Source: Mobula birostris (lineage: Eukaryota). Taken from it: a stretch of DNA of 64,000 bases. Each line of letters starts with the position of its first letter. Position 1 is the stretch's first letter. Below, piece by piece: positions 3,741 through 51,615 of this stretch. The notes under the pieces were generated by a model. The model was given only the letters and a program-made list of their open reading frames with translations, was not told the origin of the DNA and did not search any database. Made by a program: the position numbers and the translations under genes. The stretch lies in the NCBI RefSeq assembly GCF_030028105.1, contig NC_092374.1:174864057-174928056 (forward strand), in the 5' to 3' direction.

Positions 3741-3961
3741 ATTTACTTTGGACTTCCTAAAACACATGTAGTGCAGAGCATAGATAACAGTAAACAGCAA
3801 ACAGCTCGTTCTCCTAGTGACAAGAGTCTCTCCAAGATGACGCCACTGAACAGCACAGCTAATGGTGATGTCCTGCAGACAGTTCACGAAACAACTCCTT
3901 TGTCTTTCATAAAAGTTGCTGGTGAACGCAGCAGGCCAGGCAGCATCTCTAGGAAGAGGTA

Positions 3962-3999
3962 CAGTCAACGTTTCGGGCGGAGACCCTTCGTCAGGACTA
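3962..3999 (-). ncRNA. Minimal type I hammerhead ribozyme motif (GUU triplet)
   Basis: TAGTC CTGACGA A GGG tctccg CCC GAAA C GTT GACTG. Confidence 0.7.
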
Positions 4000-4554: not shown

Positions 4555-4592
4555 TAGTCCTGACGAAGGGTCTCGGCCTGAAACGTCGACTG
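4555..4592 (+). ncRNA. Minimal type I hammerhead ribozyme motif
   Basis: TAGTC CTGACGA AGG gtctcgg CCT GAAA C GTC GACTG; helix I UAGUC/GACUG, palindromic ACGU helix III. Confidence 0.8.
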
Positions 4593-5849
4593 CACCTCTT
4601 CCTACAGATGCTGCCTGGCCTGCTGCGTTCACCAGCAACTTTTATGTGTGTTGCTCGAAATTCCAGCACCTGCAGATTTCCTCATGTTTTCCTTTGTCTC
4701 TCAGTTGTCTTTGTGATTCTACTACAAAGCTGTGTGCGATTGGAACCTGTAGCTTACATTATGGTGGTGTGTTTATTGTCTGATTGAGTGATCTGGCACT
4801 TTGCTGTCTCCAAAAGAGTTCAGTTTGATTTGGAGCAGCCTGGCAGCCTGGATTCAGGGCGTGAGCTCGTGATCGAATCTATTGCTTCTCTCTGATTGAG
4901 GCATCGAGCAAGGTTGAAGTCGACGAAGATGAGAGTGGAGGTCAGGCAGGTGTTCAGCACCACCTGCCTGCATTTCACCCACCTTCCTCTCCCTCTTGCC
5001 ACGTGCTGTGGGAGGAAAGCGCAGGAGTTTTGGGCTCCCAGTTCAAGGAGGCTCGTGGCTGAGAGATCATTTTTGGAGACTTTGAGGTTCATGTTGCTTG
5101 TATTTCTGGATTCTGACTACTCCATATTTTTTTTTGGCTGATTTTGAGTGGTTTTGGGCAGACTGGGGTGTTTTGACAAAGACTGACTCTGCAGCCTGTA
5201 GTCAGTTAGTTGTGCTGAACTGAACGAAGCTGAATTCACCTGGTCTGGTCTTGGATTGATGTTGATATTCTATGTGTTGTTCACTCGCTTTTTCTTGTTT
5301 GTACAATTCGTTCTTTTTTTCGCAGGTTGGGTGTTTGATGTTTCCTTTGAACAGGTTCCATGATGTTTCTTGTTTCGTGGCTGTCTGCAGGAGGACGTAT
5401 CTTTGAGTTGTGTTCTGTATACTTTAAAAAGAGAAAAATGTATCAAAGAAAGGTTTATTTAATTATACTGTTCTCCTCTAAGCCAGTGGGGGTCAGAAAG
5501 GACCAAATTCATCCACATTGAGTTGCAAACTTTGCCCTTCCCCTATTTCTTCCTCCCATCCCCTACCTTGTCCTCTTCCTCTGCACTCGTCTGTTAATTG
5601 TAAATCTGTCTATTATTGTCACATTTAGCAAAGTACAGTGGAAATCCTGTCTTACATGCAGTTTATAAATATTAATTCATTACAACAGTGCACTGGGGTA
5701 GTAGGAGGTAAAACAACAAGAGTGCAGAATAAAGTGTTACAACAGGGCAGTGAAAGCAGACAACAGAGTTCAGGGTCATAAGGAGGTAGATTGTGAGGTC
5801 GACAGTCCCCCTGTCGTACCAGGGGGACGGTCAATTGTCTAAAACAGTG

Positions 5850-7987: not shown

Positions 7988-8630
7988 NNNNNNNNNNNNN
8001 NNNNNNNNNNNNNNNNNNNNNNNNNNNNNNNNNNNNNNNNNNNNNNNNNNNNNNNNNNNNNNNNNNNNNNNNNNNNNNNNNNNNNNNNNNNNNNNNNNNN
8101 NNNNNNNNNNNNNNNNNNNNNNNNNNNNNNNNNNNNNNNNNNNNNNNNNNNNNNNNNNNNNNNNNNNNNNNNNNNNNNNNNNNNNNNNNNNNNNNNNNNN
8201 NNNNNNNNNNNNNNNNNNNNNNNNNNNNNNNNNNNNNNNNNNNNNNNNNNNNNNNNNNNNNNNNNNNNNNNNNNNNNNNNNNNNNNNNNNNNNNNNNNNN
8301 NNNNNNNNNNNNNNNNNNNNNNNNNNNNNNNNNNNNNNNNNNNNNNNNNNNNNNNNNNNNNNNNNNNNNNNNNNNNNNNNNNNNNNNNNNNNNNNNNNNN
8401 NNNNNNNNNNNNNNNNNNNNNNNNNNNNNNNNNNNNNNNNNNNNNNNNNNNNNNNNNNNNNNNNNNNNNNNNNNNNNNNNNNNNNNNNNNNNNNNNNNNN
8501 NNNNNNNNNNNNNNNNNNNNNNNNNNNNNNNNNNNNNNNNNNNNNNNNNNNNNNNNNNNNNNNNNNNNNNNNNNNNNNNNNNNNNNNNNNNNNNNNNNNN
8601 NNNNNNNNNNNNNNNNNNNNNNNNNNNNNN
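7988..8630. other. Assembly gap (643 N)
   Basis: Run of N. Confidence 1.
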
Positions 8631-14559: not shown

Positions 14560-15490
14560 TGTGCCCCCAATGTCTCTGCCCACAGGCCACCATCAGGGTC
14601 CTTATCCCAGGGTAGGTGCCCTCATGGTCAGTACTCCCTCTATCCATATCCAGCATATCTTCCTTCATCACATCCATCGGCCGTGGTGGAATACCACTTC
14701 GTCACACCTTCTCCTCATACTGCACTTTCGGCTACCTGTAGGGACCACTCCCTTCATGACTCACTGGCCCACTCATCCCTCCCCTCTACAGACACCACAG
14801 GAGGTGTCCCTATGCCCTCTCCACTGCCTCCATCTAGGGACCTAAACACCCCTTCCAGGTGAAGGTATATTCATTTGCACCACTTCCAAACTCCTCCACT
14901 GTTTTCAGTACTCCAGCCTGATTTACATCAGCGAGATCAAGGGGCAGCCATTTAGCAGTCTTGTGTCCTGTCCACACCACTGACCTGATCTCTCACCCAT
15001 TGGTCTGTACATTCTACTTTCAGATATCAGATAATCAGTCTGTGTTCCCTTCCAATTTGCTATGTTCTCTCCAGCTTACTCCCCCATCCCTTTATCCAGT
15101 TTGCTTCCCTCCCCAACACTCACTCTGATCCCACCTGCCCATTCGATAATAAATAGGTTTAAATACACCTAATTACCTGGTGTTCTCCTCCCCTGGCCAA
15201 ACCTATCCCAACACACCGCCCCGCCCCACCCCACCCCCTCTCCTCTGCTTTCTGGATCCATCCGCCTATCACCACTCTCCCTCTGGGTCTACCTATTACC
15301 GACAGAGTCTGTCTCTGAACTCCCTCGGCCCTCACCTGGTTCTACCCATCACCTACCATCCCTGACCTCACCCCTCGCCTTCACCTCTCTGATCTCTTTC
15401 ACAGCCCTCTACACTCTCAATCCCACGGCACTGACCATCACTCTAATTCTACAAATGATTCTCGCCGTACTGAATTTCTTTAGCAGGTTG
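14560..15490 (+). mobile_element. Old Penelope-like copy
   Basis: Decayed match to the RVPLVLTHHPTSLRTQHTIL region and 3' end of the 53.8-55.1 kb Penelope. Confidence 0.55.
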
Positions 15491-15575
15491 TCTTTCTCCT
15501 TCTGTGTAATTTTCCCCGGGGTCTGGCCCCCAGGATCTGTGACATCAGGACCCTGCCTCTCCCTCCCGTTCCCAT

Positions 15576-15784
15576 ACTTTCAATTTGTGATTCCAAACTC
15601 CGCTCACTCCACCCTTCCCGGCAACTGATGACTCACACATCAGCTCTTTTTATGATTGGACGGATGCGGCTGTTTGTAATTTTATTTCCAAGTGACTCGA
15701 ACTTCTGCGACGATTTCTGCCCAGAGACCAATGACTATAAATGGATGCGGATTATGATTGGGCTACACAATGGCGCGGACCAAT
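15576..15784 (+). promoter_or_regulatory. MHC-type promoter: ISRE-like element, two X1-X2-Y modules, extra CCAAT box
   Basis: ACTTTCAATTT 15576-86. CCCGGCAACTGATG-ACTCA-N16-ATGATTGG 15617-59. CCCAGAGACCAATG-ACTAT-N15-ATGATTGG 15720-61. CCAAT 15780-84. Directly upstream of a leader-like exon. Confidence 0.8.
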
Positions 15785-15929
15785 CAGCGTATTCGGGTTG
15801 AAGCTGACGGGTCTCTCACGGAGTCTGCCGGCCTTGGGGAGCGGGGAATTGTAATGTTATCGTGTAATTGTCATGTTACCGTGCAGTGACGGAGGACATG
15901 GAAACTCGAAACAGCGCTGAGAGGGAGGA

Positions 15930-15982
15930 ATGATGCTACATCTACTCTTGCGGAGGGGTCCTCTGTGGAGGGGTCTCCGCAG
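15930..15982 (+). CDS. MHC class I signal-peptide exon, +1 frameshifted as assembled
   Basis: Ends ...GTC CTC TGT GGA GGG GTC TCC GCA G|GTGAGT (VLCGGVSA, phase 1). ATG to donor is 53 nt; removing one base near 15948-15951 gives e.g. MMLHLLLGGVLCGGVSA. Confidence 0.7.
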
Positions 15983-16199
15983 GTGAGTGAAGAGTCAATG
16001 GTCAGCGGGACATTCAGCCCCCGGTTAGCAGCGGTGGTGCCAGAGAATTTTTCTTGCTGGTGCTGCAGTGGGACTGAATTATTCGGTGATGGTGCTGAGG
16101 GATGTACCTTAAGGCAGGGGTCCCCAACCTTTTTTGCACTGCGGACCGGCCGACCCGGTGGGAGGGGGGTAGGGTTGCCAACCGACAAGAATAGCAGTC

Positions 16200-16295
16200 A
16201 ACACACATCAAAGTTGCTGGTGAACGCAGCAGGCCAGGCAGCATCTGTAGGAAGAGGTGCAGTCGACGTTTCAGGCCGAGACCCTTCGTCAGGAC
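16200..16295 (-). mobile_element. About 95-bp solo Penelope-terminus/hammerhead element
   Basis: GTC CTGACGA AGG..CCT GAAACGTCGACTG...gatgtgtgtt; absent from the homologous MITE site at about 26100. Confidence 0.75.
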
Positions 16296-16865
16296 ATAAT
16301 ACGTTGTGTTTACCCCGAGAAAGACTACCATGACCATGAAGCCTTGCGCGGGCACCAGTGTGCGCATGTGTGTACCTGCCGATCCTTTTTCTACAGATCG
16401 GTTTTGGCGATTCTGTTCAGTGAAACTACACTGTACATACATTACTTCTACTTTATATAGGCTGTGTATTTATCATATCATTCCTGCTTTTACTATATGT
16501 TAGTGTTATTTTAGGTTTTATGTAACACAGCGCATGAATATAGTGATAAGTCAATTATAAGTCACTTATAAGTCAATAGCATCGTAACATTTTAAGTAAC
16601 GTTTGGATATTTAACACACAGCACATTATTTTCCCCGTATGAACATATAAAATCATTGCAACACACCAATATCGCTGAATCAGTGGGAACCCTAGGCTTG
16701 TTTCCCTGCAACAAGACGGTCCTATCAAGGGGTGATGGGAGACAGCGATACTCGAAGGGGGTTCCTTATGTCCAGTCTATTCCGCAATTTAGTTTTCGTT
16801 GCATTCATTGTAGAAAGGCCTGCTTCGCAGAGAAATGTTGGAAATGGAAGCAACGTTTTCAGAGA

Positions 16866-19435
16866 TTTAGAAATCATAGAAAAACTACAGCACAGAAACA
16901 GGCCTTTTGGCCCTTCTTGGCTGTGCTGAACCATTTTCTGCCTAGTCCCACTGACCTGCACATGGACCATATCCCTCCATACACCTCCCATCCATGTATC
17001 TGTCCAATTTATTCTTAAATGTTAAAAAAAGAACCCACATTTACCACCTCGTCTGGCAGCTCATTCCATACTCCACCACTCTCTGTGTGAAGAAGCCCCC
17101 CCCAATGTTCCCTTTAAACTTCCCCCCCTCACCCTTAACCCATGTCCTCTGGTTTTCTTCTCCCCTTGCCTCAGTGGAAAAAGCCTGCTTGCATTCACGC
17201 TATCTATACCCATCATAATTTTATATACCTCTATCAAATCTCCCCTCATTCTTCTATGCTCCAGGGAATAAAGTCCTAACCTATTCAACCTTTCTCTGTA
17301 ACTGAGTTTCTCAAGTCCTGGCAACATCCTTGTAAACCTTCCCTGCACTCTTTCAACCTTATTTATATCCTTCCTGTAATTTGGTGACCAAAACTGAACA
17401 CAATACTCCAGATTCGGCCTCATCAATGCCTTATACAATCTCATCATAACATTCCAGCTCTTATACTCAATACTTTGATTAATAAAGGCCAATGTACCAA
17501 AACCTCTCTTTATGACCCTATCCACCTGTGATGCCACTTTTAGGGAATTTTGTATCCGTATTCCCAGATCCCTCTGTTCTACTGCACTCCTCAGTGCCTT
17601 ACAATTAACCCTGTATGTTCTACTTTGGTTTGTCCTTCCAACGTGCAATACCTCACACTTGTCTGTATTAAACTCCATCTGCCATCTTTCAGCCCATTTT
17701 TCCAGCTGGTCCAAGTCCCTCTGCAGGCTCTGAAAACCTTCCTCACTGTCTACTACACCTCCAATCTTTGTATCATCAGCAAATTTGCTGATCCAATTTA
17801 CCACATTATCATCCAGATCATTGATATAGATGACAAATAACAATGGACCCAGCACTGATCCTTGTGGCACACCACTAGTCACAGGCCTCCACTCAGAGAA
17901 GCAATTCTCTGCTACCACTCTTTGGCTTCTTCCATTGAGCCAATGTCTAATCCAATTTACCTCCTCTCCATGTATACCTAGCGACTGAATTTTCCTAACT
18001 AACCTCTCGTACGGGACATTGTCAAATGCCTTACTGAAGTCCATGTAGACAATATCCACTGCCTTCCCTTCATCCACTTTCCTGGTAACCTCCTCGAAAA
18101 ACTCCAATAGATTGGTCAAACATGACCTACCACGCACAAAGCCATATTGACTCTCCCTAATAAGTCCCTGTCTATCCAAATGCTTGTAGATTCTGTCTCT
18201 TAGTACTCCCTCCAATAACTTACCTACTACCGACGTTAAACTTACTGGCCTGTAATTTCCCGGATTACTTTTTGATCCTTTTTTAAACAACGGAACAACA
18301 TGACCCACTCTCCAATCCTCCGGCACCTCACCTGTAGGCAGCGACATTTTAAATATTTCAGCCAGGGCCCCCGCAATTTCAACACTAGTCTCCTTCAAGG
18401 TCCTAGGGAACACCCTGTCAGGTCCCGGGGATTTATCCACTTTAATTTTCCTCAAGACACCAAGCACCTCCTCCTTTTCAATCTGTACAGTTTCCATGGT
18501 CTCACTACTTGTTTCCCTTAATTCCATAGACTTCATGCCAGTTTGCTTAGTAAATACAGATGCAAAAAACCTGTTTAAGATCTCCCCCATTTCCTTTGGT
18601 TCCGCACATAGCCGACCACTCTGATCTTCAAGAGGACCAATTTTATCCCTTACAATCCTTTTGCTCGTAATATACCTGTAAAAGCTCTTTGGATTATCCT
18701 TCACTTTGACTGCCAAGGCAACCTCATGTCTTCTTTTAGCCCTCCTGATTTCTTTCTTAAGTATTTTCTTGCACTTCTTATACTCCTCAAGCACCTTATT
18801 TACTCTCTGTTTCCTATACATGTCATACAACTCCCTCTTCTTCTTTATCAGAGTTGCAATATCCCTTGAGAACCAAGGTTCCTTATTCCTATTCACTTTG
18901 CCTTTAATTCTGACAGGAACATACAAACTCTGCACTCTCAAAATTTCGGCTTTGAAGGCTTCCCACGTACCGATCACATCTTTGCCAGAGAACAACCTGT
19001 CCCAATCCACGCTTCTTAGATCCTTTCTCATTTCTTCAAATTTGGCCTTCTTCCAGTTCAGAACCTCAACCCTAGGACCAGATCTATCCTTGTCCATGAT
19101 CAAATTGAAACTAATGGTGTTATGATCACTGGAACCAAAGTACTCCCCTACACAGACTTCCGTCACTTGTCCTAACTCGTTTCCTAACAGGAGATCCAAT
19201 ATTGCATCCCCTCTAGTTGGTCCCTCTATATATTGATTTAGAAAACTTTCCTGAGCACATTTTACAAACTCTAAACCATCTAGACCCCTAACAGTATGGG
19301 AGTCCCAATCAATATATGGAAAATTAAAATCCCCTACCACCACAACTTTGTTTCCTGCAGTTGCCTGCTATCTCTCTGCAGATTTGCTCTTCCAATTCTC
19401 GTTGACTATTGGGTGGTCTGTAATACAATCCCACT
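16866..19435 (-). mobile_element. CR1 LINE, 5'-truncated, long open ORF2 (endonuclease C-terminus plus RT, 760 aa)
   Basis: ORF 17061-19343: VVGDFNFP, SDHN, NYRPVSLTS, GVPQGSVLGP, FADD; 3' tail ttctatgatttcta. Confidence 0.95.
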
Positions 19436-19729
19436 CATGGCTATCTCAGGATATTTAGCCTTGACTTTGATTCGGAATGCCGGCAGAGATGTTATGTCAA
19501 ACATACTTTTCTGCCCGTCATCATTTGCAAGCTCGAGGAGTTGATCTTCTTCCCGCGCTGACATGGATGACGCATGGATAATGACCTCGGGTGCGTTCAA
19601 GTTCAACAGTGGGCGTGACAGGGAATGAGGAAAAGTGCAGCTGACTGATATCGCCAAATCGTATCATTTCCTCGCGACCCAGTAGCACATGCTTTGCAGC
19701 CCGGTGGTTGGGGACCGCTGCCCTGTGGT

Positions 19730-21360
19730 AATATGTATTTACAAGGCCAGACACGTGGCGTTCAAAAGTCAGTTTCAAGCATTATGTGCCTACTATAAAT
19801 GCTTCTGTTGATTCACAAGCAACAGCAATTGATCAATATAATATAGGAGTGAACTGTGACATTGTCAACAGTATCGGCGACAACCCGGGCTACACAGAGC
19901 ATAAACAAACAAACCAACAGAGCATCCGACCCACAGCGCACAACGTGAATCACGCACCAATCCCGCAATCAGCGTCAAATTCGTGCTTTTCAACTGAAAA
20001 ACACAACACTAACCCACAATGTCCACTGCTATTCGCATTACATAGACAGACAATGCCAAAAGATACACCGTTATTAAAGTCAAATAAGGCAAACAACAGA
20101 TGCAAGGCTTTACCAGGAGTTCGACAAATCGTACTCTGACCATGCAATACCTCAATTAATTCGGCTACTGAATTTAAAACAAAAATCAACAGAATCACCG
20201 CTTGGAAATCTAAGCAAAACCAGTAGGCTTAATAGCAGTAAATGTAATAGTTTAGGATTTTCAGGAAACATAAGGACTATGGGGTATCCACCACAAAATA
20301 ATAATAATAATCAGCATTAGTTTGGCCCAAATTTTTAAAAAATCAACTGCACTCACCATTAATGTTTTCAGAGAAGCACAATCTGTCTGTTGTTGTGATT
20401 GGTGGTGAAAGCATCAATGATTTTCTGGGTGTCAAGTGCTTTGATCCTCCGGCTGTTTATGGCCAACAGGGCCAAGTTGCTGTTCTGAGCATCGCCGCTG
20501 CCATTCCTTAGGTAGCTTTTGAGGCATCTGAGGCAAGAGAAACTCCGTTCACAGGAGGCAGACGTCACAGGTAGAGTCAGTGATATGCAGATTAGTTTGT
20601 ATAAATCTACAAATGCATCGTGGTAGGGTCTCATTAGAGCTAGAAATTCCACTGTGTCATTCACTGTCTGTCCTTGCTGGAGACTCAACCACTGCTCTCA
20701 TATACTCACGATTTTAGACAATCTTTGCATGTCCTTTGTCAAGCATATTTCCCAATCTTGAACCGTCTTGTTTTCTCAGTCTGAATTCAACCCATGACTC
20801 CATAGCAAACTTATGAGCTGCACTTACATGGTGGGTTTTGAAAGCTGTTGTAGCTTTCCACCAGTTGCGGTGACCGGTGACAGTGAAGGTAAACTCAGAA
20901 TGGAACCCATGTCCTCCACACAGGAAATGCCTGCATGCGAAGCAGGACGTAGTATCTTTCATGATCGAATATTCCAGTCAGTCAAACCAGCCACCAATAA
21001 AACTCCTTTGCTGATTGCCAAACTTGTTGTGAGCAGCGAAGGGTACTTTCTCAATGCTGGCCAATGGGGTCCTTCCTCAGGCTGCTGGCTAATATCGTTA
21101 ACAGTATTCCCACTAACACCAAGAGCAGCTTCATCCACGTTCTCTTCCGAATCCCGCTCCATTTCTTGTTCCTCTACTTCACCCTCACACTCCTTCAATG
21201 AACTGCTGTCGTCCTCATCCCCACTTACTTCTTTTTGCATGTCACTCAATTAAGACAGGCTCAGGCTGAGACACCACTGATTACTCTGGACGAGGTCCTT
21301 TTCTCACTAAAAATAGATCCATTTTTCACGCTGCCAAGATAATGCACGTGCCAGGCCCAC
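19730..21360 (-). mobile_element. hAT (Tip100/ZMYM1-like) internally deleted transposase remnant
   Basis: LTLPVTSASCERSFSCLR dimerisation motif (20368-20688) and a CFACRHF...NWWKA...H...H zinc-finger-like segment (20714-20962). Confidence 0.8.
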
Positions 21361-22059
21361 GCTAGCTTGTAAACGTTGTGTGTGTGTGTGTGTGTGTGTG
21401 TGTGGCATCCGTTAGTCTCGCGAGACCATGGATCTGCGCCTGGATGTATACTATCGATCCCTCGCGTGAGTGAGAGTGAGTGACATCATCACCTTAAGTG
21501 ATCTTAGATCAGCTAACTGACCTGAGGACAGCAACGGCAAGACATTGACAACGAACGAATAAGCAGAAGCATAGAGTGGATCTAACAGAGTTTATAACTT
21601 CATTGCTGTGTGGTTGCTATGGTAATTGGGGGCGTTGTTTCACTAGATCAACTGGAGAAACAAGCTGTATTCAAAACTCTACAGAGACAGCAGCTGCAAT
21701 TTGTATGTGAAATTTCAGTTAATTTCTTGGTGGTGCTATTGTAATTTCTGCTGGTACTATAGCACCAGCAAGCACCGCCACTGTGTGAGGGTCCCACGCC
21801 ACCCAGCCTAAGGTCAGTGGAGGGCGGTTTGGAGGTGTTGTGTGGTGGGAGCCCCTGCAGAGACTGCACACAGGAGGCAAGATGCGGAGGGATGGGTTAA
21901 CTTTGACACCTTCACTGACTTGGGCAGGAACTGGACGTGGACAGTGGGACACCAGATGGCTGGTTACACTGGGGTTTAGAGGATGGCGAGGGAAGAGCCA
22001 ATTCAGTCCTGTAGATCCGTGCTGGAGTACTGCTTCCTCCCGACATGTTAAGGTGAGGT

Positions 22060-22109
<50 letters not shown>

Positions 22110-23449
22110 GGGCATTTACAGAGGACAGAGAGGAGTTTGTACTGGGTTGTGGGAAGGAAGCTAAATGTATTACAGAAAGGGAAGGAGGTGAGACACCTTC
22201 ACGTTGTGAAGGAGAGGTTATTAATCTGTTAACCAGAGGGGTCTATGTACTGGCCAGCGCGGAACACCCTATCAGAGGCAGAGTATTGTCCAATCCCTCC
22301 CACCTGTGTTGCGTGAATGAAGTCACCGGAGAAAATTACTGGTAGATACAAAGCAGCTTCTTCATTCGACAAAACAAGGTACAGCAGGCATCATATGGAG
22401 ATGCTTTCAGTAGAAGGGAGTCATTGGCCCAATATGGGGCTTGATATTTTATGTGCCAAACATCAAAGGACAACTCCATATTTACAAAGCCTGGACAATG
22501 CTTTCTTTGAAACTACATACAACATCCACACCTCCTGATTTACATCCTTACCACAGACATCCAAATGAATATTAAGCAGCATTGTCTGGTCTGGGAGTCC
22601 AGGCATTTCGAAACCCATTGTTCAGAGCTGCACCCCAAATTAAACGCACAATAAATTTTCAGACGTGAAGACTGGCAGCCAAAGTCAATTGTTAAATGTA
22701 AATGTCCTAAACCCAAAAATCACTCTAACACCACCCACTCATTTTCTCACATTCCCAGTTCTGGACCTGAAACATTAGCTATGGTGCTGCCTGGGCTGTT
22801 CAGAGTTTCCAGTTTTATGGTGCAGCCCATTTTGTGCCTTCCTCCCTCTCCCGGGAATGAAACCTTTGGAGTTTCCGTAGCTCTGTGTTTTTACACGATC
22901 GGGTTGCTAGCCTCGTGCCCAACCCTCCTCCTTTCCCATCCGGTCCCGAAACCATCCATGGCTGAGTTTTTCCGATTGAAATGTCCAAATGTCTCTTTAA
23001 TGTAGTGTTAGTATGTGATTGCACCACATCCCCGGCAGTGAGTTTCAGATATCAGACACCCTCCGGGTAAAAACACCAGATCTTCTGTGAAACTCCTTCC
23101 TCTCACCTTAACCTATGACCCCGTGTTTTAATACCCCTATGATGGGACAAAGATTTTGACGTCCTTCCGAACTGTGCCTGTTACATATCGGGTCCACCCC
23201 CTTGGCCTCCTATAGTGTACTGAGCAGAAATGCTCACAGTACTCAGTGCAGACTGTCCACCGTTTTATGCAGTTCCAATTGTAGGGAGAATGAGATCTTC
23301 TTTACCTTCTCTGTCAAGGATAATCTGAAAATCATCTGTATATCAAGAGCAGAGGTGCCTGAAGGATCAGTGTGGCTGTATATGTGTGGAGCCTGCGGTC
23401 TCAAATAAATACTTCACATCTCCACTTACTGGGGAGAAGGTCAGACCCA

Positions 23450-25830
23450 AGCTGGGGAATTCAGGAAAGACTACAGAGACATCCTGAAACATTTCAATAT
23501 TACAAACGAGGTGTTGGTGTTCTTGAGCTGCATAAAAATGGATAAATCCATGGTCTGAATGAGAGTCTCCGAGGATATTATGGGAATGAAGGCAGAAATT
23601 GGTCGAGCCCTGGGAAGGGCTATTTACACAGTATCTCTAAATAATTAAATAAATAGTGAAGAGGATTATCATAAGTTACAGAGGGATCTTGATCTGCAGG
23701 GTAAATGGTTGATGAAATGTAAATTAGTTCAGATAAGTATAAGGTTCTGCAATTTAGGAAATCAAATCCAGGTACGACTTTCAAGGTGAGTGGTTGTGAA
23801 TACTGGAGAAGAGGTACCAAGGTCTTCAAGTACGTAATTCCCTGAAAGGTGCATCCCAGGTAGATAGTCATACTTTATTGATCCCAGGGGAAATTGGTTA
23901 GGGTGGCAAAGAAGGATTTTGGCAAGTTCACCTTCATCAGTCAAGACAATGAGTATAGAAATTGATTTATTATTTGTAGGACTTCAGTGCAGTTTCATTT
24001 GGATTATTGTGATCTGCTTTGGCCAATCTGCTCAGGAAAGAAGCCATTAGTTCGAATGCACTGCCTGAGTCAGTGGTGGAGGCAGATACTCTAGTGAAAT
24101 TTAAGAGACTACTAGACAGGTATATGGAGGAATTTAAGGTGGGGGGTTATATGGGAGACAGGGTTTGAGGGCCGGCACAACATTGTGGGCCAAAGGTCCT
24201 GTACTGTGCTGTACTGTTCTATGTTCTATGTTCTAAGTTGCAATGCACCAAAAGTGAGTTATCAGCATGTTCCTTGGGCTGGAAGGAGTGTTATGGAGAG
24301 TGGCTGAGCGGCTTGGGAGTTTTGTCATTGGAGATTAGGAGAATGAGGGGTGATCTTGTTAAAGTGTGTGACGAACAGGATGGATAATTGGTGGATGCTG
24401 TGTGCATGGATTTTCAGAAGACCTTTGATAAGGTGCCTCACATGAGGCTGTTTAACAAGAGCCCATGGTATTGCAGGCAAGATATCGCATGGATTGAGGA
24501 TTGGCTGATCGGCAGGAGGCTAGGAGTGGGAATAAAGGGAGCCTTTCCCTATTGGCTACCTGTGACTAGTGTTGTTCTGTAGTGATTGGTGTTTGGACCA
24601 CTTCTTGTTACATTGCATGTCAGTGATTTTGGTAATGGAATTGATGGCTTTGTGGCCAAGTTTGCAGATGATACGAAGAGAAGTGGAGGGGCAGGTAGTG
24701 CTGAGGAAGCAGAGAGGTTGCAGAAGGACTTTGCTGAGGAGAATGGACAAAGAAGTGACAGATGGAATACAGAGTCGGGAAGTGTACGGTCATACACTTT
24801 GGTAGAAGGAATGAAAGCATAGAATAAAAGCATCTGAATGGAGAGAAAATTCAAAAATCTGAGGTGGAATGAGACTTGGGAGACCTTGTGCAGGATTCCC
24901 TAAAGGTTAATTTGCAGGTTGAGTCACTGGTGAGGAAGGCAGCTGCAAAGTCGGTGTTCATTTCAAGAGAACTAGAACATAACAGCAAGGATGTAATGCT
25001 GAGCCTTTATGAGGCACAGGTGAGGCCTTATGTAGAGTGCTCTGAGCAGTTTTACACCCCTTGTTTAAGAAGGGATGTATTGACATTGGAGAGGGTTCAG
25101 AGGTTCACAAGAGTGATGAAATGGCAGAGCAGACTTGGGCCGAATTCTGCTCCTGTGTCTTATGGTGACATCTTGAGGGTTAATGCCCACAGTCTCTTTC
25201 CTGGGGTTGGGTAATCACAATCTGAGGGCAAAAGTTTCAGGTGGGAGTTAAGAGAACTTGCCAAAGGGCAGCAACGTCCCCCAGTAGGTGGTTCATCTTT
25301 GCTGAAGGTGGTCCCAGGTGAAGTGGTTGAGGCAGGTACATTAACAACATTTAAAAGGCACTTTGATAGAAACATGGATGGAAAATTTCAATGTGAAAGA
25401 AGTAGTTTTGTGAACCATCTGGAGGATGTTGCCCCTGGTCGAGTTGTTCACTTGCATCATCATCTTTCGAGGGAGACGGAAAACGCTGATGAATGGGACA
25501 CTTGGATAGGAGTTTTAGTTGGGCTGAAGGGCCTGTTTCTGAGATGTGTGACTCTCTGACTCCTCGGCCACACATATTCCGATTTCTACCCTCACTGGCA
25601 CAGAGTAATTCACTACAACTCTAGATCCTGCTTTTTGTCTTCAGCCACACCCCCATAAATACTCTCTGCAGGACCACACCTCTCTGCCTATTTCTTTGGT
25701 ACCAACACCTACCATGACCTCTGACTTTTCAACCTCCCCCTTCAGAACCTCTGTACCACTCTGACCCTTCCCTGACCCTGGCACCAGGGAGGCATCACAC
25801 CTTCCTGGGCTCAGCATGAGGAGCACGTGT
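23450..25830. mobile_element. Cluster of degenerate CR1 fragments
   Basis: MDFQKTFDKVPH, KFADDTK, VRPYVECSEQFYTP remnants. Confidence 0.75.
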
Positions 25831-25982
25831 CTTTACCCCTCTGTAACGATTCCTCGACCACCAACACTCACCATGACTTTTCCCTCCCCTGCTGTGGGTC
25901 AGAGCCAGCAGTGGTACCACAATCTCAGCAGTTGTTACTGTTTCTCCATGTGAGATTTTTCCCCCAGCAGTGTCCGATATGG

Positions 25983-28708
25983 CAGGGGTCCCAAACCTTT
26001 ATTGCACTATGGACCGGTTTAATATTGACAGTATTCTTGCGGACCAGCCGACCTGGGGGGGTGGGGGGTGGTAGGGTTGCCAACGGACAAGAGTAGAAGT
26101 CAAATACGTTAGATTCTGGACTAGTTCCTGAGGATTGGAGGGTGGCTAATGTAACCCCACTTTTTAAAAAAGGAGGGAGAGAGAAACCAGGGAATTATAG
26201 ACCGGTTAGCCTAACGTCGGTGGTGGGGAAACTGCTGGAGTCAGTTATCAAAGGTGTGATAACAGCACATTTGGAAAGCGGTGAAATCATCGGACAAAGG
26301 CAGCATGGATTTGTAAAAGGAAAATCATGTCTGACGAATCTCATAGAATTTTTTGAGGATGTAACTAGTAGAGTGGATAGGGGAGAACCAGTGGATGTGG
26401 TATATTTGGATTTTCAAAAGGCTTTTGACAAGGTCCCACACAGGAGATTAGTGTGCAAACTTAAAGCACACGGTATTGGGGGTAAGGTATTGATGTGGAT
26501 AGAGAATTGGTTAGCAGACAGGAAGCAAAGAGTGGGAATAAACGGGACCTTTTCAGAATGGCAGGCGGTGACTAGTGGGGTACCGCAAGGTTCAGTGCTG
26601 GGACCCCAGTTGTTTACAATATATATTAATGACTTGGATGAGGGAGTTAAATGCAGCATCTCCAAGTTTGCGGATGACACGAAGCTGGGTGGCAGTGTTA
26701 GCTGTGAGGAGGATGCTAAGAGGATGCAGGGTGACTTGGATAGGTTGGGTGAGTGGGCAAATTCATGGCAGATGCAATTTAATGTGGATAAATGTGAAGT
26801 TATCCACTTTGGTGGCAAAAATAGGAAAACAGATTATTATCTGAATGGTGGCCGATTAGGAAAAGGGGAGGTGCAACGAGACCTGGGTGACATTATACAC
26901 CAGTCATTGAAAGTGGGCATGCAGGTACAGCAGGCGGTGAAAAAGGCGAATGGTATGCTGGCATTTATAGCGAGAGGATTCGAGTACAGGAGCAGGGAGG
27001 TACTACTGCAGTTGTACAAGGCCTTGGTGAGACCACACCTGGAGTATTGTGTGCAGTTTTGGTCCCCTAATCTGAGGAAAGACATCCTTGCCATAGAGGG
27101 AGTACAGAGAAGGTTCACCAGATTGATTCCTGGGATGGCAGGACTTTCATATGAGGAAAGACTGGATCAACTAGGCTTATACTCGTTGGAATTTAGAAGA
27201 TTGAGGGGGGATCTGATTGAAACGTATAAAATCCTAAAGGGATTGGACAGGCTAGATGCAGGAAGATTGTTCCCGATGTGGGGAAGTCCAGAACAAGGGG
27301 TCACAGTTTGAGGATAAAGGGGAAGCCTTCTAGGACCGAGATTAGGAAAAACTTCTTCATACAGAGAGTGGTGAATCTGTGGAATTCTCTGCCACAGGAA
27401 ACAGTTGAGGCCAGTTCATTGGCTATATTTAAGAGGGAGTTAGATGTGGCCCTTGTGGCTACGGGGGTCAGGGGGTATGGAGGGAAGGCTGGGGCGGTGT
27501 TCTGAGTTGGATGATCAGCCATGATCATAATAAATGGCGGTGCAGGCTCGAAGGGCCGAATGGCCTACTCCTGCACCTATTTTCTATGTTGTGTTTACCC
27601 ATAGAAAGACTACAATGACCATGAAGCCTTGTGCGGGCAACAGTACGCATGCATGACCTCTGCAAGTGTGTACCTGCCGTTTTTCTACAAATCGTTTTTG
27701 GCGATTCTGTTCGGTGGGGGGGGGGGCGGGTTGAGGGAGGTTAATCACGACCGGAATATAGGTGATAAGTGGCATAGACACTCAATCTCGTTTCTAAAAG
27801 GCTTTATCTAATGAATTTAATATTAAACACACAGCGCATATTTTCCTCGCATGAATATAGTGATAAGTCAATTATCAGGGGAGGACAGGGGAGCTTGAAG
27901 TAAGTGTTGAATGAACTTCCAGTCGAAGTGGCAGAGGCAGGTTCGATATTATCATTTAAAGAAAAATTGGATAGGTATATGGACAGGAAAGGAATACGGG
28001 GTTATGGGCTGAGTGCCGGTCGGTGGGACTAGGTGAGAGTAGCGTTTGGCACGGTCTAGAAGGGCCGAGATCGCCTGTTTCTGTGCTGTAATTGTTATAT
28101 GGTTATATAGGTCAATAGCATCATAACATTTTAAGTAACGTTTGGATATTAAACACACAGCACATATTTTCCCCGTATGAACATATAAAATCATTGCAAC
28201 ACATCAATATCGCTGAATCAGTGGGAGCCCTGGGCTTGTTTCCCTGCAACAAGACGGTCCTATTGAGGGGTGATGGGAGACAGCGATACTCGAAGGGGGT
28301 TCCTTATATCCAGTCTATTCCGCAGTTTAGTTTTCGTTGCATTCATTGCAGCAAACTCCGCTTCGTAGAAAAATGTTGGAAATGGAAGCAACGTTTTCAA
28401 GTTTTCGTGGCTATCTCAGGATATTTAGCCTTGACTTTGATCCAGAATGCTGGCAGAGATGTTATGTCAAACATACTTTTCAGCCTGCCGTCATTTGCAA
28501 GCTCGGTGATTTAATCTTCTTCCCGCGCTGACATGGATGACGCGTGGATAATGACCTCCCGTGTGTTCAAGCTCAACAGAGCACGTGACAGGGAATGAGG
28601 AAAGATGCAGCTGACTCATATCGCCAAATCACATCGTTTTCTCGCGGCCCAGCAGCACATGCTTTGCGGCCCGGTACCGGTCCGCGGCCTGGTGGTTGGG
28701 GACCGCTG
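25983..28708. mobile_element. hAT MITE with perfect 8-bp TSD, carrying a CR1 insertion
   Basis: CGATATGG at 25975-82 and 28709-16; CAGGGGTCCC / GGGGACCGCTG termini. Confidence 0.9.
26110..27588 (+). mobile_element. CR1 LINE 3' half (RT ORF 26142-27311 plus 3' UTR)
   Basis: NYRPVSLTS, GVPQGSVLGP, KFADDTK; tail cctattttctatgtt. Confidence 0.95.
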
Positions 28709-29967
28709 CGATATGGTATACGTGTTTGAGATTATTCCCCCAGCAGTGTCCGATACGGTATACGTGTTTGAGATTATTCCCCCAACAGTGTCTGATATGG
28801 TATACGTGTTTGTGATTATTCCCCCAGCAGTGTCCGATACGGTATACGTGTTTGAGATTATTCCCCCAGCAGTGTCCGATATGGTATATGTGTTTGAGAT
28901 TATTCCCCCAGCAGTGTCCGATATAGTATACGTGTTTGAGATTATTCCTCAGCAGTATCCGATACCGTATATGTGTTTGAGATTATTCCTCAGCAGTGTC
29001 CAATACGGTATACGTGTTTGAGATTATTCCTCAGCAGTGTCCGATACGGTATACGTGTTTGAGATTATTCCCCCAGCAGTGTCCGATACCGTATATGTGT
29101 TTGAGATTATTCCCCCAGCAGTGTCCGATACAGTATACGTGTTTGAGATTATTCCCCCAGCAGTGTCTGATATGGTATACGTGTTTGAGATTATTCCCCA
29201 GCAGTGTCCGATACGGTATCCGTGTTTGAGATTATTCTCCAGCAGTGTCCGATACGGTATCCGTGTTTGAGATTATTCTCCAGCAGTGTCCAATATGGTA
29301 TACGTGTTTGAGATTATTCCCCAGCAGTGTCCGATACGGTATCCGTGTTTGAGATTATTTCCCCAGCAGTGTCCGATACGGTATCCGTGTTTGAGATTAT
29401 TCCCCCAGCAGTGTCCGATATGGTATATGTGTTTGAGATTATTTCCCCAGCAGTGTCCGATACGGTATACGTGTTTGAGATTATTCTCCAGCAGTGTCCG
29501 ATACGGTATCCGTGTTTGAGATTATTTCCCCAGCAGTGTCCGATACGGTATACGTGTTTGAGATTATTTCCCCAGCAGTGTTCGATACGGTATACGTGTT
29601 TGAGATTATTTCCCCAGCAGTGTCCGATACGGTATACGTGTTTGAGATTATTTCCCCAGCAGTGTCCGATATGGTATACGTGTTTGAGATTATTTCCCCA
29701 GCAGTGTCCGATACGGTATACGTGTTTGAGATTATTTCCCCAGCAGTGTCCGATACGGTATACATGTTTGAGATTATTTCCCCAGCAGTGTCCGATACGG
29801 TATACGTATTTGAGATTATTCCCCCAGCAGTGTCCGATATGGTATACGTGTTTGAGATTATTTCCCCAGCAGTGTCCGATACGGTATACATGTTTGAGAT
29901 TATTCCCCAGCAGTGTCCGATACGGTATACATGTTTGAGATTATTTCCCCAGTGGTGTCTGATATGA
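28709..29967. repeat. 41-42-bp minisatellite (ccgatacggtatacgtgtttgagattattcccccagcagtgt)
   Basis: About 30 units; one seed unit at about 25950; the array continues at 31620-32140. Confidence 0.97.
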
Positions 29968-31619
29968 CAGGCGTCCCTAACCTTTTTTGCACCGCGGACC
30001 GGTTTAATATTGACAATATTCTTGCGGACCGGCCGACTGGGGTGGTGGGGGTGTTCAAGTAGGGTTAAACTCACCTCAACATGTCTTTTACAGTTAGAGT
30101 TGCCAACTTTCTCACTCCCAAATAAGGTACTAAAGTAGCAGTCAAATCCTGGGGCACTTTGCCCTAGAAACGACAACCATGACATGAACCCTTGCGCGGG
30201 CACCTGTGTGCACGTCTGTGCCGATTTTTTTCTCCCACAAATTGGTTTTGCCTTCATCTTCCCGACTACACTGTACATACATTATTTCTACTTTATATAG
30301 GCTATGTATTGTGACGAAAGAGGGTTACAAAAGTACACATAGATTAACTGTCCTGTGCTGGCACCAGGGAGATCAGCAGTTGGTCTGCCACCTGTCTGCA
30401 GGAGAGAGAGAGAGAGATAAGGAAAACAATGGAGCAGCATTTGGAGATGTTAATGAAGGAGACATCAGTCTGGGTATTTGTCAAGATCGGCTCCGTTTGA
30501 ACCCTGAACTGTTTGAAGTGTAATGGACAGGCGATACCCCAGCAGGGGGATAAAAAGGGACAGGTTCGCTAAGGCAGACACACACGACACCACGAGGTAA
30601 CGAGACCCTGGAAGCGGTGCCCCCCTCGAAAGTCGGCGGGAGTCTTTTGGAGGGCTGGTTGCGGAACCAAGCCATAGACGCACAGGGTGGAAAGGTACGG
30701 ATCGGCGGGAGCCTGGTGTGTGTCCGCCCTTGCCTGGGTGCCAGGTTCACTGCAGAGGATCGACCGTATCTGAAGGAGGGGTCACAGTCAGTGACCTCAG
30801 AAGACATTACAAAGGGCTCGCCTGAAAGCTGCCTGTGAGCAATATCGGAAGGTCTGTGTGGAAGCCGTTTGAATATTCATTCGCCTCTGCTCCGCTCTCT
30901 TCCTCCCCCGCCTTGTCCAATGGCACGACAGTGATTACTGTGAACTGAACTGAACCCAATTGAACTGAACTTTGCGTCACTTTGAAACTGGTCATTTACC
31001 CCTAGATGACGATAGAGCTTGATTGATCCTGTTATCCTAGATCTGTGTACATGTGTGTTTATTCATTGCTAACCTGTTGCATTTGTATCCTTACTATTAG
31101 AGTACTGTGTTGCTTGTTTCTTTAATAAAACTTTCTTAGTTCTACTGATCCAGACTCCAAATGAGTGATCCATTTCTGCTGGTTTGGCAACCCAGTTACG
31201 GGGTACATAACAGTATGCATCATATCATTCCTGCTTTTACTATATGTTAGTGTTATTTATTTTTGGTTTTATGTGTTATTTGGTATGATTTGTTAGGTTA
31301 TTTTTAGGGTCTGGGAACGCTCAAAAACTTTTCCCATATAAATCAATGGTAATTGCTTCTTCGCTTCACGCCATTTCGGCACGAAAGGTTTCATAGGTAC
31401 GCTCTATCTTAGCGGGGGAAATACAGGAGAAACCAATTTAGCCCAATATACAGGATGTCCCGACAAATACGAGACAGTTGGCAACCCTATGTTCAAGTTC
31501 AACAGTGCGTGACAGGGAATGAGGAAAGGTGCAGCTGACTCATATCGTTTCCTCATGGCCTGGTAGCACATGCTCTGCGGCCCTGTACTGGTCTGCGGCC
31601 CAGTGGTTGGGGACCGCTG
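29968..31619. mobile_element. hAT MITE interrupted by a solo LTR
   Basis: CAGGCGTCCCTAACC ... GGTTGGGGACCGCTG; flanks tgatatga/cgatacgg are consistent with a CpG-decayed TSD. Confidence 0.8.
30310..31212 (+). mobile_element. Solo LTR (Gypsy-like), 903 bp
   Basis: TGTGACG...CATAACA termini, 4-bp TSD GTAT, internal AATAAA near 31125. Confidence 0.85.
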
Positions 31620-32140
31620 CGATACGGTATCCGTGTTTGAGATTATTCCCCAGCACTGTCCGATACGGTATACATGTTTGAGATTATTTCCCCAGCAGTG
31701 TCGGATACGGTATACGTGTTTGAGATTATTACCCAGCAGTGTCCGATACAGTATACGTGTTTGAGATTATTCCCCCAGCAGTGTCGGATACGGTATACGT
31801 GTTTGAGATTATTCCCCAGCAGTGTCCGATACGGTATACGTGTTTGAGATTATTCCCCCAGCAGTGTCGGATACGGTATACGTGTTTGAGATTATTCCCC
31901 CAGCAGTGTCCGATACGGTATACGTGTTTGAGATTATTCCCCCAGCAGTGTCCGATATGGTATACGTGTTTGAGATTATTACCCCAGCAGTGTCCGATAT
32001 GGTATACGTGTTTGAGATTATTCCCCAGCAGTGTCCGATATGGTATACGTGTTTGAGATTATTCCCCCAGCAGTGTCCGATATGGTATACGTGTTTGAGA
32101 TTATTCCCCCAGCAGTGTCCGATATGGTATACGTGTTTGA
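31620..32140. repeat. 41-42-bp minisatellite, second block
   Basis: Same unit as 28709-29967. Confidence 0.95.
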
Positions 32141-32989
32141 GAGGGCAGTGACCACTGAGAGTCCCTGACACGACCTGCCTGTCCTTACTGTCCTACCTGG
32201 TGTCACCCATCTCCTCCTCCTCGACTTGTGATGTGACCAGATCACTAAGTGGACCTTTTACCGGATTTTCTGCATCTGAACTGCCCCAGAGTCCAGCAGC
32301 TCTGTGTGTTCTGCCATGAGCTGTGACTGGACACATGTCCTGCAGTGTTAGTGGTGAGTGGAAATGTCTCTACTCTCATGTCCTGCAGGAGGGACAGACC
32401 AATGTCCTCACCTCCCCAGTCTCCTCTCTGTGGAGAGAAAATAGTCACCTGTAAGAATAGGTGAGTGTTTGCTCCAGTTGTCACATCACAGTGCATCGAA
32501 ACATCTGTGAAATGTGTCATTTGCCTCATTGATCAACACAATCTGAGGATGTTTTGGGGGAAGCCTGCAAGTGTTACTTTGCTTCTCGTCAGTGTCCCCT
32601 CTGATTTGTAATGACCAGTGTGGTCAAAAACCTTGTGCTGGGCACGTTTTTGCCCCGCGACAATAACATGCGCACAGTGAATTTTTCAGTGGAAGTGAAC
32701 CTGAAGCAATTCTGAGGATAATAAATTACCGCGTTCGGTTAGTTGTTTAAAAGAAATAAAATAATACACATCATTGAGTTTTATTTCTCATATGCAATAG
32801 CCAGTTCTGAAATCTGCGGGCAAGTCGTCATAAACACCAGGTTGTCAACACTGTTCACATCAGAAACTGGAAAAGTGATTGTGTATGATTGTGAAATATA
32901 CTTAACATGGCAACGAGGTCGAGGGTGACAACCCCTTGTGCGCAGTTTAAATTCCTTTGTGCGCAAGTAGCACACCATGCCCAAACGTA

Positions 32990-33150
32990 TAACCTGTACG
33001 TCTGTGTCATGTGGGGGGAAACCGGAGCTCCGAGATGAAACTCAAACATTCATGTGCAGAATGTACAAACTCCTTGCAGAGCTTAGCTGGAATTGAACCC
33101 AGATCCTTGACGCTATAAAGTGCTATGCTAACCACTACATTACCGTCCAA
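32990..33150 (-). mobile_element. tRNA-derived SINE fragment
   Basis: gaaaccggagc...ggaattgaaccc...gctaaccactac, the antisense of a tRNA-like head. Confidence 0.55.
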
Positions 33151-33519
33151 TCCCTTCACTAAAGGCCAAATATTATCTCGTAGAATGGCCGCTCCTTCTT
33201 TTTCTACCCTTCCTATTGCTTTCCTCCACCAGTGATCCCACAAATTCCTCCTGTCCCACTGTTGCCTCTGGTTCTGTCGACTGAGCGACGTCCTGACCAT
33301 CAATGGAGAATGTGTCGGACAGTTAGATCCTGTCTCTGCTTTGAATGTTCCCCTTGGGGTGAGGGGTCAGTCCTGATTCTCCGGTTCTGGGACCCTGATT
33401 CTCTCAGGAGAAGTTGGGGGTGGACTCCAGGGATTTGGGTCTCAGGGTGCTGATTTCAGATATGGGTTCTCCTTGCAATCTGGACTCCAAGCCTCTCTAA
33501 CTCTCTGCTCCGGTTCCAG

Positions 33520-33780
33520 GCTCTCACTCTCTCCGTTATTTCTTCACGGGAGTGACTCCGGGGTCGGGAGTCCCTGAGATAATGACAGTTGGGTACGTGG
33601 ACGAAGAGCCGATCATTTACTATGACAGTGAGTTGGGGAAGGCGGTGCCCCGTCAGCAGTGGATGGTGGAGAGTCAGGGAGACGACTACTGGGAGCGGAA
33701 CACACAGATCTATCAGGGATGGGATCAGTGGTTCAAGGCCAACATCCCAATCGCCATGAGCCGGACCAACCAGACAGGGG
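33520..33780 (+). CDS. MHC class I alpha1 exon
   Basis: ttccag|(G)SHSLRYFFTGVTPGSGVPEIMTVGYVDEEPIIYYDSELGKAVPRQQWMVESQGDDYWERNTQIYQGWDQWFKANIPIAMSRTNQTG|gtgagt; Y7, Y59, R84 and the N86 glycan site present. Confidence 0.97.
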
Positions 33781-33789
33781 GTGAGTGGT

Positions 33790-34400
33790 GAACAACATGG
33801 GGGGGGGTGATGGGAGGGACCGGGTATGATGGGTGTAATGGGGAGCAATGGGAGGGATTATGGAGGGGAGGGGGAACAGGGTGACTGTGGGGGGGGATAG
33901 GGGTGACTGTGGCAATTGTGGAGGGTAGGTGTGACTGGGGATTGTGGGAAGGACGGATTAACTGAGAATGGGGGGGTAACTATGGGGATTGGGGGAAGGG
34001 TAACTGGGGATTATGGGGGGATGGGACGGGCAACTGTGGGGATTGTGGGGGGGATGAGGAAACTGGGGATTGTGGGGTGCGCGGGTGTAACTGGGGATTT
34101 TGGGGAGATGGGTGTAACTGGGGATTGGGAAAACAAGAGTAACTGGGGATTGGGGGACAGTTGTAACTGGCGATTGTGGGGGGACGGGAGTAACTGTGGG
34201 TATTGGGATGGCGGTAATTGGAGATTGGGATGGGGTAACGGGATTGTGGAGGGAACAGGAGTAACTGGGGAATGCTGGGGTATGGGATGGGTTAACTGTG
34301 GGGATTGGGGGACGGGATGGGGTAACTGAGGGGGGGATGGGACAACTGGGAATTGTGGGTGGGGGGAGGGGGAAACTGTGGGGATTGTAGGGGATGGGGA
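33790..34400 (+). repeat. G-rich intron-2 satellite (ggggtaactggggattgtggg-like), left block
   Basis: Dense GGG runs with strong G skew. Confidence 0.9.
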
Positions 34401-40078: not shown

Positions 40079-40699
40079 CTTTAATCGCTTCGTCGAGCAC
40101 CTCAGCTCCGTCTGCCACAACAGGCAGGATCTCCCGGTTGCCACCCACTTCAACTCTGCTTCCCACTCCCATTCAGATATGTCCATACATGGCCTCCTCT
40201 ACTGCCATGATGAGGCTAAACTCAGGTTGGAGGAGCAACACCTCATATACCGTCTAGGTAGTCTCCAGCCCCTTGGTATGATCATAGAATTCTCCAACTT
40301 CCAGTAATTCCCTCCCCCTCCCTTCCTCTACCCTTATTTCACTCTGCCCCCTCCCCCAGCTGCCTACCACCTCCCTCATGGTTCCGCCTCCTTCTACTAC
40401 CCATTGTGTTTTCCCCTATTCTTTCTTCACCTTTCCTGCCCATCCCCTCCCTGCCTCTCTCCCCCACCCTTTGTCTTTCCCCTTATTGGTTTTTCACCTG
40501 GAACCTACCAGCTTTCTCCTTCCCGCCCTCCGCCCACCTTCTTTATAGGGCCTCTGCCCCTTCCCACTACAGTCCTGACGAAGGGTTCCGGCCCGAAACG
40601 TCGACTGATCGTTTCCACGGATGCTGCCCGACCTGCTGAGTTCCTCCAGCGTGTTGTGAGTGTGGCTTTGACCCCAGCATCTGCAGGTAGATTATTTTG
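40079..40699 (+). mobile_element. Penelope 3' fragment inserted in L1 ORF1
   Basis: 13-bp TSD TCTTTAATCTGGT at 40066-78 and 40700-12; GIY-YIG C-terminal remnant. Confidence 0.88.
40570..40607 (+). ncRNA. Intact minimal hammerhead motif, sense strand of class I intron 2
   Basis: CAGTC CTGACGA A GGGT tccg GCCC GAAA C GTC GACTG. Confidence 0.8.
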
Positions 40700-41569: not shown

Positions 41570-42981
41570 CAAGTTAGTAACTTTAGCCATTAGCTTGGTA
41601 TTGTTTTCGAGTAAGCTGGAGCAGATGTTTTCCAGCTCACTGATGCGCTGGCTCAGGTCGTCCGTAGCAAGCTCGAGAGAGGGTAAGCGATGGCCATGGT
41701 CCTCCACTTTGCATTGGATTTGATCAAGTTTTGTTTCCAGCAGGCTGAACGAAAATTTAAATTCGGCTGCTAACACTACGCGGTGTTGGTCTAGTAGCGT
41801 GGAGATAGCCTCTACTGTCAGGCCAGCCGCTGAATGGTCCTTTTCTTCCAGTGAGCTTTAACATCTGCGGGATGCAAATTTACGGGAGATCCACGTAAAT
41901 ACCATCAGGCCGACAGTACAAAGTCGCAGCTAACTTATAGAGTCTGTCTGCCTAACAAGGGGAGGGGCTTGTCTTTAGAAATTATACAGGTATCAGTAAC
42001 ATCCACGTTATCTATTGTCAGCGAGGGAGGGGTCGAAAAGGGTTTCTGTCATCGGGACACTGGCTATCCCGATGGTGCTAATCGACTGTCCATTCGCTTG
42101 CGCGTCCGCGGGGGTGGTGGGGGGCACAGAAGACAGAGTAGCTCCATATCAATCAGACAAGACCCCTCACTATCTCCTGTTTTTACAACCACCATGGGCT
42201 CTTCTCTCATCCTTCTGGATAGTCTGATGGCTGCTGCCCGCACCACCGGTTCTCCGTGGCGCCCCTATTGCTGAGGCGAGGGATGAGTAAAAGAGGAAGT
42301 GGGCAACTGTTGATCCTCTGAAGCCTGGGGAGGGGGACGGCAAGGGGCGGGGGTGACAGTTCCGGGCCCACTGTCCCTTTTCCCGCAATTTCGGTATGTA
42401 GTTTGGCAATCTCGGGCCCAGTGCCACTTCTCACCACAACGACAGCATTGGTCGCTTGGGGAATCAGGGAGATTTCTTCGAAACCCCGAATTCCCTCCCC
42501 TTCCCCACCTCATCCCTGAGATGGGCACCCTTTGCTTTGGGAGTACTGGCCTACTGACATTTTCCCTCTCTCGTCTGTTTCCTGAGAAAAGAGTCCCTCC
42601 CGATCCATATGTCCAAAGCAGATTCTGTAATTTATATCCTTGGGCTTGCAGCGGCCTCATGCAGGTTAACAAAGTCTGGATGGCCAAGGGACCATTCCCC
42701 TCTAAGGGTGTCCCAACACTCTCTCCCCACTTCTGCTTAAACCTTGCTACAAAATCTGGAATTGGTTCACCCTTCCTCTGCGAGCACCGTGTCACCTCCC
42801 CTTTACCGCTATGTCTCCGTGCTCCCCCATTATAGCAGTTTTCCCTCCATTCTCCAACCAGTGTGAGATTGTCTCATTACTGGGCACCGTGTCATCCTGT
42901 CCCCAGTCTGCTCCATCCCCCGGGGGTATCACAAAAGCCTCCTTTAGCGAAGGCCCAGAGGACGACGGGCACGTTTTAATA

Positions 42982-51570: not shown

Positions 51571-51615
51571 CAGGCTGTTTTTCATCAGGGAACAAGGGCT
51601 ACAATCCCACCAAAA
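51571..51615 (+). CDS. MHC class I cytoplasmic exon 1
   Basis: ttacag|AGCFSSGNKGYNPTK|gtaagt; Tyr motif GYNP; phase 1 to phase 1. Confidence 0.85.

Follow-up and report, generated by a model that had tools for sequence, protein, structure and literature searches.

A class I MHC heavy-chain gene of the giant manta ray (Mobula birostris) appears to have been silenced by a single net extra base in the coding sequence of its signal peptide. We put at about 60% the probability that the leader exon described here is this gene's own first exon and that its extra base is a real germline frameshift, one that would make this copy a null allele or a very young pseudogene; the ancestral state of the exon is here reconstructed from protein sequences. 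A first, sequence-only reading had left three explanations side by side, namely a very recent null allele, a polymorphic on/off switch and an indel error in the consensus. The first of these is now the best supported, with the extra base present in a separately built DNA contig and the remaining gene open and conserved.

Within the window, the whole 64-kb stretch of DNA that we analysed, the exons from alpha1 to the stop codon are 100% identical by tblastn to the NCBI proteins XP_072115031 and XP_072115032, the apparent mismatches being split codons. The best match in a search with alpha2-alpha3 was a Mobula birostris protein, found among batoid class I heavy chains, and the window's product (P0002/P0027) contains the alpha1/alpha2 peptide-binding domain (Pfam PF00129) followed by a C1-set Ig domain (PF07654). 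No further class I exon was detected by tblastn anywhere in the window. The two NCBI proteins are isoforms from one cluster on a 210 Mb chromosome of GCA_030028105.1. The tandem acceptor CAG/CAG at 51568-51573 is the sole difference between them, and the cytoplasmic tails of isoforms X1 and X2 read KKKAGCF and KKKGCF, one Ala apart. Both models begin with MTVGYVDEE at an internal alpha1 Met (33582), with no signal peptide and with the first 20 alpha1 residues absent. Because both start at this internal Met, the public annotation also gives the gene no leader.

The coding exons from alpha1 onwards (261, 273, 264, 108, 45 and 47 nt) are open, bounded by AG/GT sites, all in phase 1 and closed by the stop codon at 51928-51930 (Table 1). 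There is one exon per domain and the splice sites are canonical, confirming the earlier claim that all downstream exons are open. A search for pseudogene decay beyond the first lesion revealed no additional stop, splice defect or excess of odd substitutions between alpha1 and the stop. Private changes fall in 8 of the 151 conserved columns (those at least 93% conserved among 15 batoid relatives), compared with 3-22 in the relatives themselves. The disulphide cysteines of alpha2 and alpha3 (columns C115, C178, C213 and C268) do not vary in the alignment (A1), and the NQT glycosylation site at the end of alpha1 is present.

Table 1. Features of the class I gene and of the region ahead of it (positions in the window).
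Feature	Positions	Strand	Basis
Candidate promoter region with MHC-type motifs	15578-15791	+	regex positions
Short upstream reading frame	15898-15933	+	direct reading
Probable leader (signal peptide) coding part of exon 1, 53 nt	15930-15982	+	frame reading, six-frame scan
Zone with the net extra base	15944-15960	+	six-frame scan, base-removal test, gapless DNA contig
Local direct repeat	15949-15975	+	repeat comparison
Splice donor GTGAGT after CAG	15983-15988	+	direct reading
Intron 1, 17,537 nt, repeat-filled	15983-33519	+	sequence scans, read depth
alpha1 exon, 261 nt, phase 1 in and out	33520-33780	+	tblastn, frame reading
TGA that would end translation from ATG15930 if exon 1 is spliced to alpha1	33575-33577	+	computed
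Internal Met, NCBI start	33582-33584	+	comparison with XP_072115031/32
alpha2 exon, 273 nt	49389-49661	+	tblastn, frame reading
alpha3 (C1-set) exon, 264 nt	49911-50174	+	tblastn, frame reading
Connecting and transmembrane exon, 108 nt	50447-50554	+	tblastn, alignment
Cytoplasmic exon, tandem acceptors CAG/CAG	51571-51615	+	frame reading, isoform comparison
Last coding exon, stop TGA 51928-51930	51884-51930	+	tblastn, frame reading

Several residues depart from those of relatives. Seven of the eight peptide-termini residues (Y7, Y59, R/Y84, T143, K146, W147, Y159 and Y171), placed by alignment with relatives and by 6LUP numbering, are present; the K146-equivalent, in the alpha2 exon, is Asn (TKDNW, against TKNKW). 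In the alpha2 segment CIDAVKRYV, Ala replaces the Trp of CIEWLKKYV. This Ala is common to Hemitrygon akajei proteins P0003 and P0004, the first of which also has no Lys at the K146-equivalent, carrying Glu. The PEF motif carries Ile, and the membrane span (IAIDVVLVIL) has Asp where all compared relatives have Val. The shared Ala and non-Lys residues might mean that the sublineage is an older, non-classical-like one, or that exons were exchanged, and the membrane-span Asp could be a functional charge or reflect early relaxed constraint. The Asn, Ala, Ile and Asp residues suggest that, already before the lesion, this was no typical classical locus. The description of the frame break as the only lesion thus holds for the reading frame and splice sites, but not for the Asn at the K146-equivalent or the Asp in the membrane span.

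The leader exon does not supply an AUG and signal peptide in frame with alpha1. The alpha1 exon, which begins after ...ttccag and reads a split G followed by SHSLRYFF..., requires phase 1. Read from the ATG at 15930, the exon gives MMLHLLLRRGPLWRGLR and ends with two bases of an incomplete codon, that is, in phase 2, and the ATG at 15898 opens 11 codons closed by a TGA (15931-15933) that overlaps the main ATG. The frame that reaches the donor in phase 1 reads CYIYSCGGVLCGGVSA-G (ending ...CGGVLCGGVSA-G); it has no ATG and is shut upstream by the TGA at 15931. The last three bases of the exon, CAG, precede the GTGAGT donor. Direct reading bears out each of the points made earlier about this exon, namely its VLCGGVSA-G end ahead of GTGAGT, the phase 2 exit of the frame from ATG15930 and the arrest of ATG15898 at the TGA at 15931.

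The leader MMLRLLLLALLCGGVSA-G opens the relatives' proteins in Mobula, Hypanus, Hemitrygon and Pristis, and the two halves of the exon, MMLHLLL and GVLCGGVSA-G, resemble this family leader but occupy different frames. When all six frames of the window were scanned, MMLRLLLL matched best at 15930-15953 and ALLCGGVSAG at 15955-15984 (score 44; the next best site for the latter scored 27). These two sites adjoin each other in differing frames. The leader has 53 coding nucleotides, where the 17-residue leaders of relatives imply 52. A 25-mer spanning the exon end and donor is unique in the window even when 3 mismatches are allowed. The view that this is an authentic-looking class I leader lying one base out of frame was therefore sound, as the family match in the six-frame scan exceeds chance.

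Removal of a single base anywhere from 15936 onward yields an open phase-1 leader, and the two family-like halves are both preserved only if the removed base falls within about 15944-15960. Because several removals in this zone keep both halves, the extra base is not assignable to one position. Dropping C15951 does restore MMLHLLLGGVLCGGVSA, as the sequence-only reading had proposed for a one-base deletion, but C15951 is one choice among several. The family match in the ATG frame reaches about 15950 and resumes in the next frame from about 15955. A local direct repeat lies here (TGCGGAGGGGTC and TGTGGAGGGGTC, 11 of 12 bases identical, 15 nt apart), with the frame break inside its first copy; this repeat might be linked to the origin of the mutation.

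The extra base is reproduced in the best DNA run of the same species (X1, holding 81% of sampled words), where a 367-base contig covers 15622-15988 with 0 differences and 0 gaps. This run lists no indel in the leader exon and contains no second contig over it. The contig is independent of the assembly software and consensus step, not of the individual: the run, whose depth is only about 2.5, may have been made from the assembly's source animal. An error in the consensus is unlikely, because the contig was built without the assembler's consensus and shows the extra base without a gap, and the earlier proposal of such an error loses most of its force.

If the assembly were nevertheless wrong, the true genome would carry an intact leader of 52 coding bases. 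As a sequencing or assembly error would have it, the lesion amounts to one net base beside a run of four G in a gene that is otherwise intact, and the sole confirming run may hold the assembly's source data; we still judge this explanation improbable, since the X1 contig, made apart from the assembler, matches exactly and without a branch. Dropping one G of the four-G run, moreover, gives MMLHLLLRRVLCGGVSA, which has two Arg in its hydrophobic core and is not family-like. Homopolymer miscalls of the usual kind need a longer run than four G.

The suggestion of a polymorphic on/off switch finds no support, as no second allele was seen at the leader site in the one sample that covers it and no mutable repeat longer than the run of four G lies at the extra base. 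The remaining runs of the species are tiny or contain nothing of this stretch. We consider it doubtful that the frameshift segregates, as a null allele of a transcribed class I locus; if it did, individuals would differ in their number of working class I genes. Were it segregating, the situation would resemble human leukocyte antigen (HLA) null alleles or haplotypes of variable gene content.

The exon end and intron start have counterparts elsewhere. A segment of about 15948-16028 is also matched by contigs of DNA runs X1 and X6 (the latter from a related species), and a contig of the probable RNA run X19 is identical over 15967-16017 and then turns into unlike sequence; the X19 contig is therefore from a sister gene or unspliced RNA. 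Together, these contigs show that sister genes share the exon end and intron start.

The claim that an MHC-type promoter stands ahead of the leader is upheld at the level of motifs. The candidate region contains an ISRE-like TTTCAATTT at 15578, an X1-like GCAACTGATG at 15621, an X2/AP-1-like TGACTCA at 15629, ATTGG (Y) at 15655 and 15757, CCAAT at 15728 and 15780, and TATAAA at 15736. DNA of the related species (X6) covers this promoter at about 92-96% identity, and no X6 contig lies on the leader at 90% or more identity. Around TATAAA (15736-15749), 8 of the 14 bases differ in the X6 contig, far above its flanks, and the contig over these bases may come from a paralog and not an ortholog. The promoter segment 15610-15647 is 82% identical over 39 nt to a minus-strand module at 2314-2351. 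That sequence forms part of a second X1/X2/Y-type module on the minus strand at 2250-2351 (…GTAACTGATGACTCAG…CTCATTGG…), from which a short stretch leads to a GTGAGT donor near 2253; the module faces leftwards out of the window and is followed by no class I exon within it.

The gene seems to be transcribed, because four small, probable RNA runs from the same species (X19, X20, X25 and X26) hold its alpha2/alpha3 exons: they contain 43-51% of the sampled words of alpha2-intron-alpha3, a stretch of which exons make up 69%. The two annotated isoforms also suggest transcript support. We infer that these transcripts join 15982 to 33520; if the frameshifted leader is used in its 53-base form, the transcript would read ...GGGGTCTCCGCAG up to its junction with 33520. 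Short protein fragments that run upstream of alpha1, and might reveal what is spliced to it, were searched for and not found.

It is also conceivable, though we think it unlikely, that the promoter and leader at 15.6-16.0 kb are decaying and no longer spliced to alpha1. The alpha2/alpha3 transcripts would then begin elsewhere, and the frameshift would be one sign of decay in an exon that had previously fallen into disuse. Two probable RNA runs with the alpha2/alpha3 exons (X19 and X20, examined over 15300-16100) do show no contig on 15813-15966, but contigs record presence only, with no expression level, and cannot prove absence, and some records are dropped by a filter. A disused leader would also fit with the insertion of a repeat only about 45 nt into the intron and with the intron continuation of the sister-gene contigs, which we searched for across the window and did not find. 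Set against these points, tblastn, the six-frame scan and the 25-mer search found no second leader-like exon on either strand of the window; the order, strand and distance of the exons agree with the family; and expressed sister genes have the identical donor and last 16 coding bases.

With the leader as the gene's own first exon, a germline net gain of one base would have direct consequences for the product. Translation from the AUG at 15930 would depart from the signal-peptide frame after about seven codons and, with exon 1 spliced to alpha1, would end at the stop at 33575-33577 as a 36-residue product. This copy would be unable to make a secreted, membrane-anchored heavy chain. Because the stop precedes five exon junctions, the mRNA should by the usual rule be a target of nonsense-mediated decay. 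The lesion is probably young, because the remaining gene is still intact, and the copy would be a null allele or a pseudogene that has only begun to decay. We also considered compensation by splicing; a one-base shift of the donor or of the alpha1 acceptor yields no GT/AG.

That the gene functions despite the shift seems to us very improbable. Two GT dinucleotides inside the exon (15958 and 15973, giving exon ends at 15957 or 15972) are in phase 1 relative to ATG15930, but as donors they read GTCCTC and GTCTCC, without consensus bases, and the resulting leaders would have only five hydrophobic residues before Arg-Arg. The absence of decay in the downstream exons would suit a gene that still works, and Met 33582, five bases after the stop, could serve re-initiation. 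The product from this Met would, however, have no signal peptide, none of the first 20 alpha1 residues and no first groove strand, and judging from the known fold (for example, 6LUP) it could not reach the endoplasmic reticulum or fold the class I groove. Re-initiation at this Met to give a leaderless cytosolic fragment is less likely than a segregating null allele.

A class I gene silenced by a one-base frameshift but otherwise intact is a well-known form of null allele or young pseudogene. Human HLA null ('N') alleles arise from single-base indels, pseudogenes of the HLA-H/J type are familiar, and the family as a rule evolves by birth and death, leaving many pseudogenes. The manta gene shares with these cases a disabling change in an otherwise intact gene: it is a complete member of an MHC multigene cluster apart from one small frame-shifting change, and its transcript is apparently still made. 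It differs in that the lesion lies in the leader exon and that it occurs in a batoid fish with class I genes tens of kilobases long. Newt genomes each hold 8-23 MHC-I pseudogenes and fragments (PMC12863176). Our literature search found no paper on Mobula MHC genes. Most likely, the frameshift is an ordinary event in a gene family known for null alleles and pseudogenes, and opens no new mechanism.

Among molecules, the nearest sequences are 'F10 alpha chain-like' proteins of Mobula, Hypanus and Hemitrygon, and the closest of the solved structures, identified by using a sister protein, is shark MHC class I (6LUP chain A). The gene resembles elasmobranch classical-type class I in its domain order (leader, alpha1, alpha2, alpha3, membrane span and tail), phase-1 exons, conserved cysteines, NQT site and a tail ending SSSNSSAMA. 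Unlike those genes it has its leader out of frame, Asn in place of the Lys that binds the peptide C-terminus, Ala for Trp, and the membrane-span Asp.

For annotation, our reading implies that the NCBI models would best be regarded as products of a gene with an out-of-frame signal peptide, and not as a working or 'MR1-like' class I molecule. Tallies of functional class I genes in manta rays should enter this locus as null or uncertain. Should the lesion turn out to be polymorphic, it would offer an easy marker of variable functional MHC gene number in an endangered species.

The distance of 17.5 kb between leader and alpha1, which had been presented as an oddity, is unexceptional for the family. 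Coding spans of sister genes on the same assembly are 18.8, 27.5 and 40.5 kb, that of a Hemitrygon relative is 27.5 kb, and that of this gene is 36.0 kb. Intron 1 contains a highly repeated element from near 16027, at which read depth reaches thousands, a minus-strand LINE-type open frame (17064-19367, 768 aa) and 42-nt minisatellites at 28709-29964 (30 copies) and 31620-32142 (12.5 copies).

The window holds further repeats and minor features. An Rfam scan of all of it gave no match. A unit of about 95 nt occurs in at least five copies of 93-100% identity (16199-16295, 116-212, 3908-3997, and, on the minus strand, 4557-4653 and 47386-47480), with weaker copies at 40572-40643, 53461-53532 and 55621-55692, and is probably a SINE-like family. 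In two species, read depth over the adjoining segment (16029-16100) runs into the thousands. Intron 2 contains 36-nt minisatellites at 42979-43831 (24 copies) and 45297-45596 (8 copies), and G-rich degenerate repeats lie at both of its ends (33790-34330 and 47900-49300). Upstream of the gene, 643 N at 7988-8630 mark an assembly gap or masked stretch. At 15325-15445, run X1 holds two forms, one identical to the window and the other with 3 substitutions and deletions of 5 and 2 nt, which represent heterozygosity in the sample or a repeat copy.
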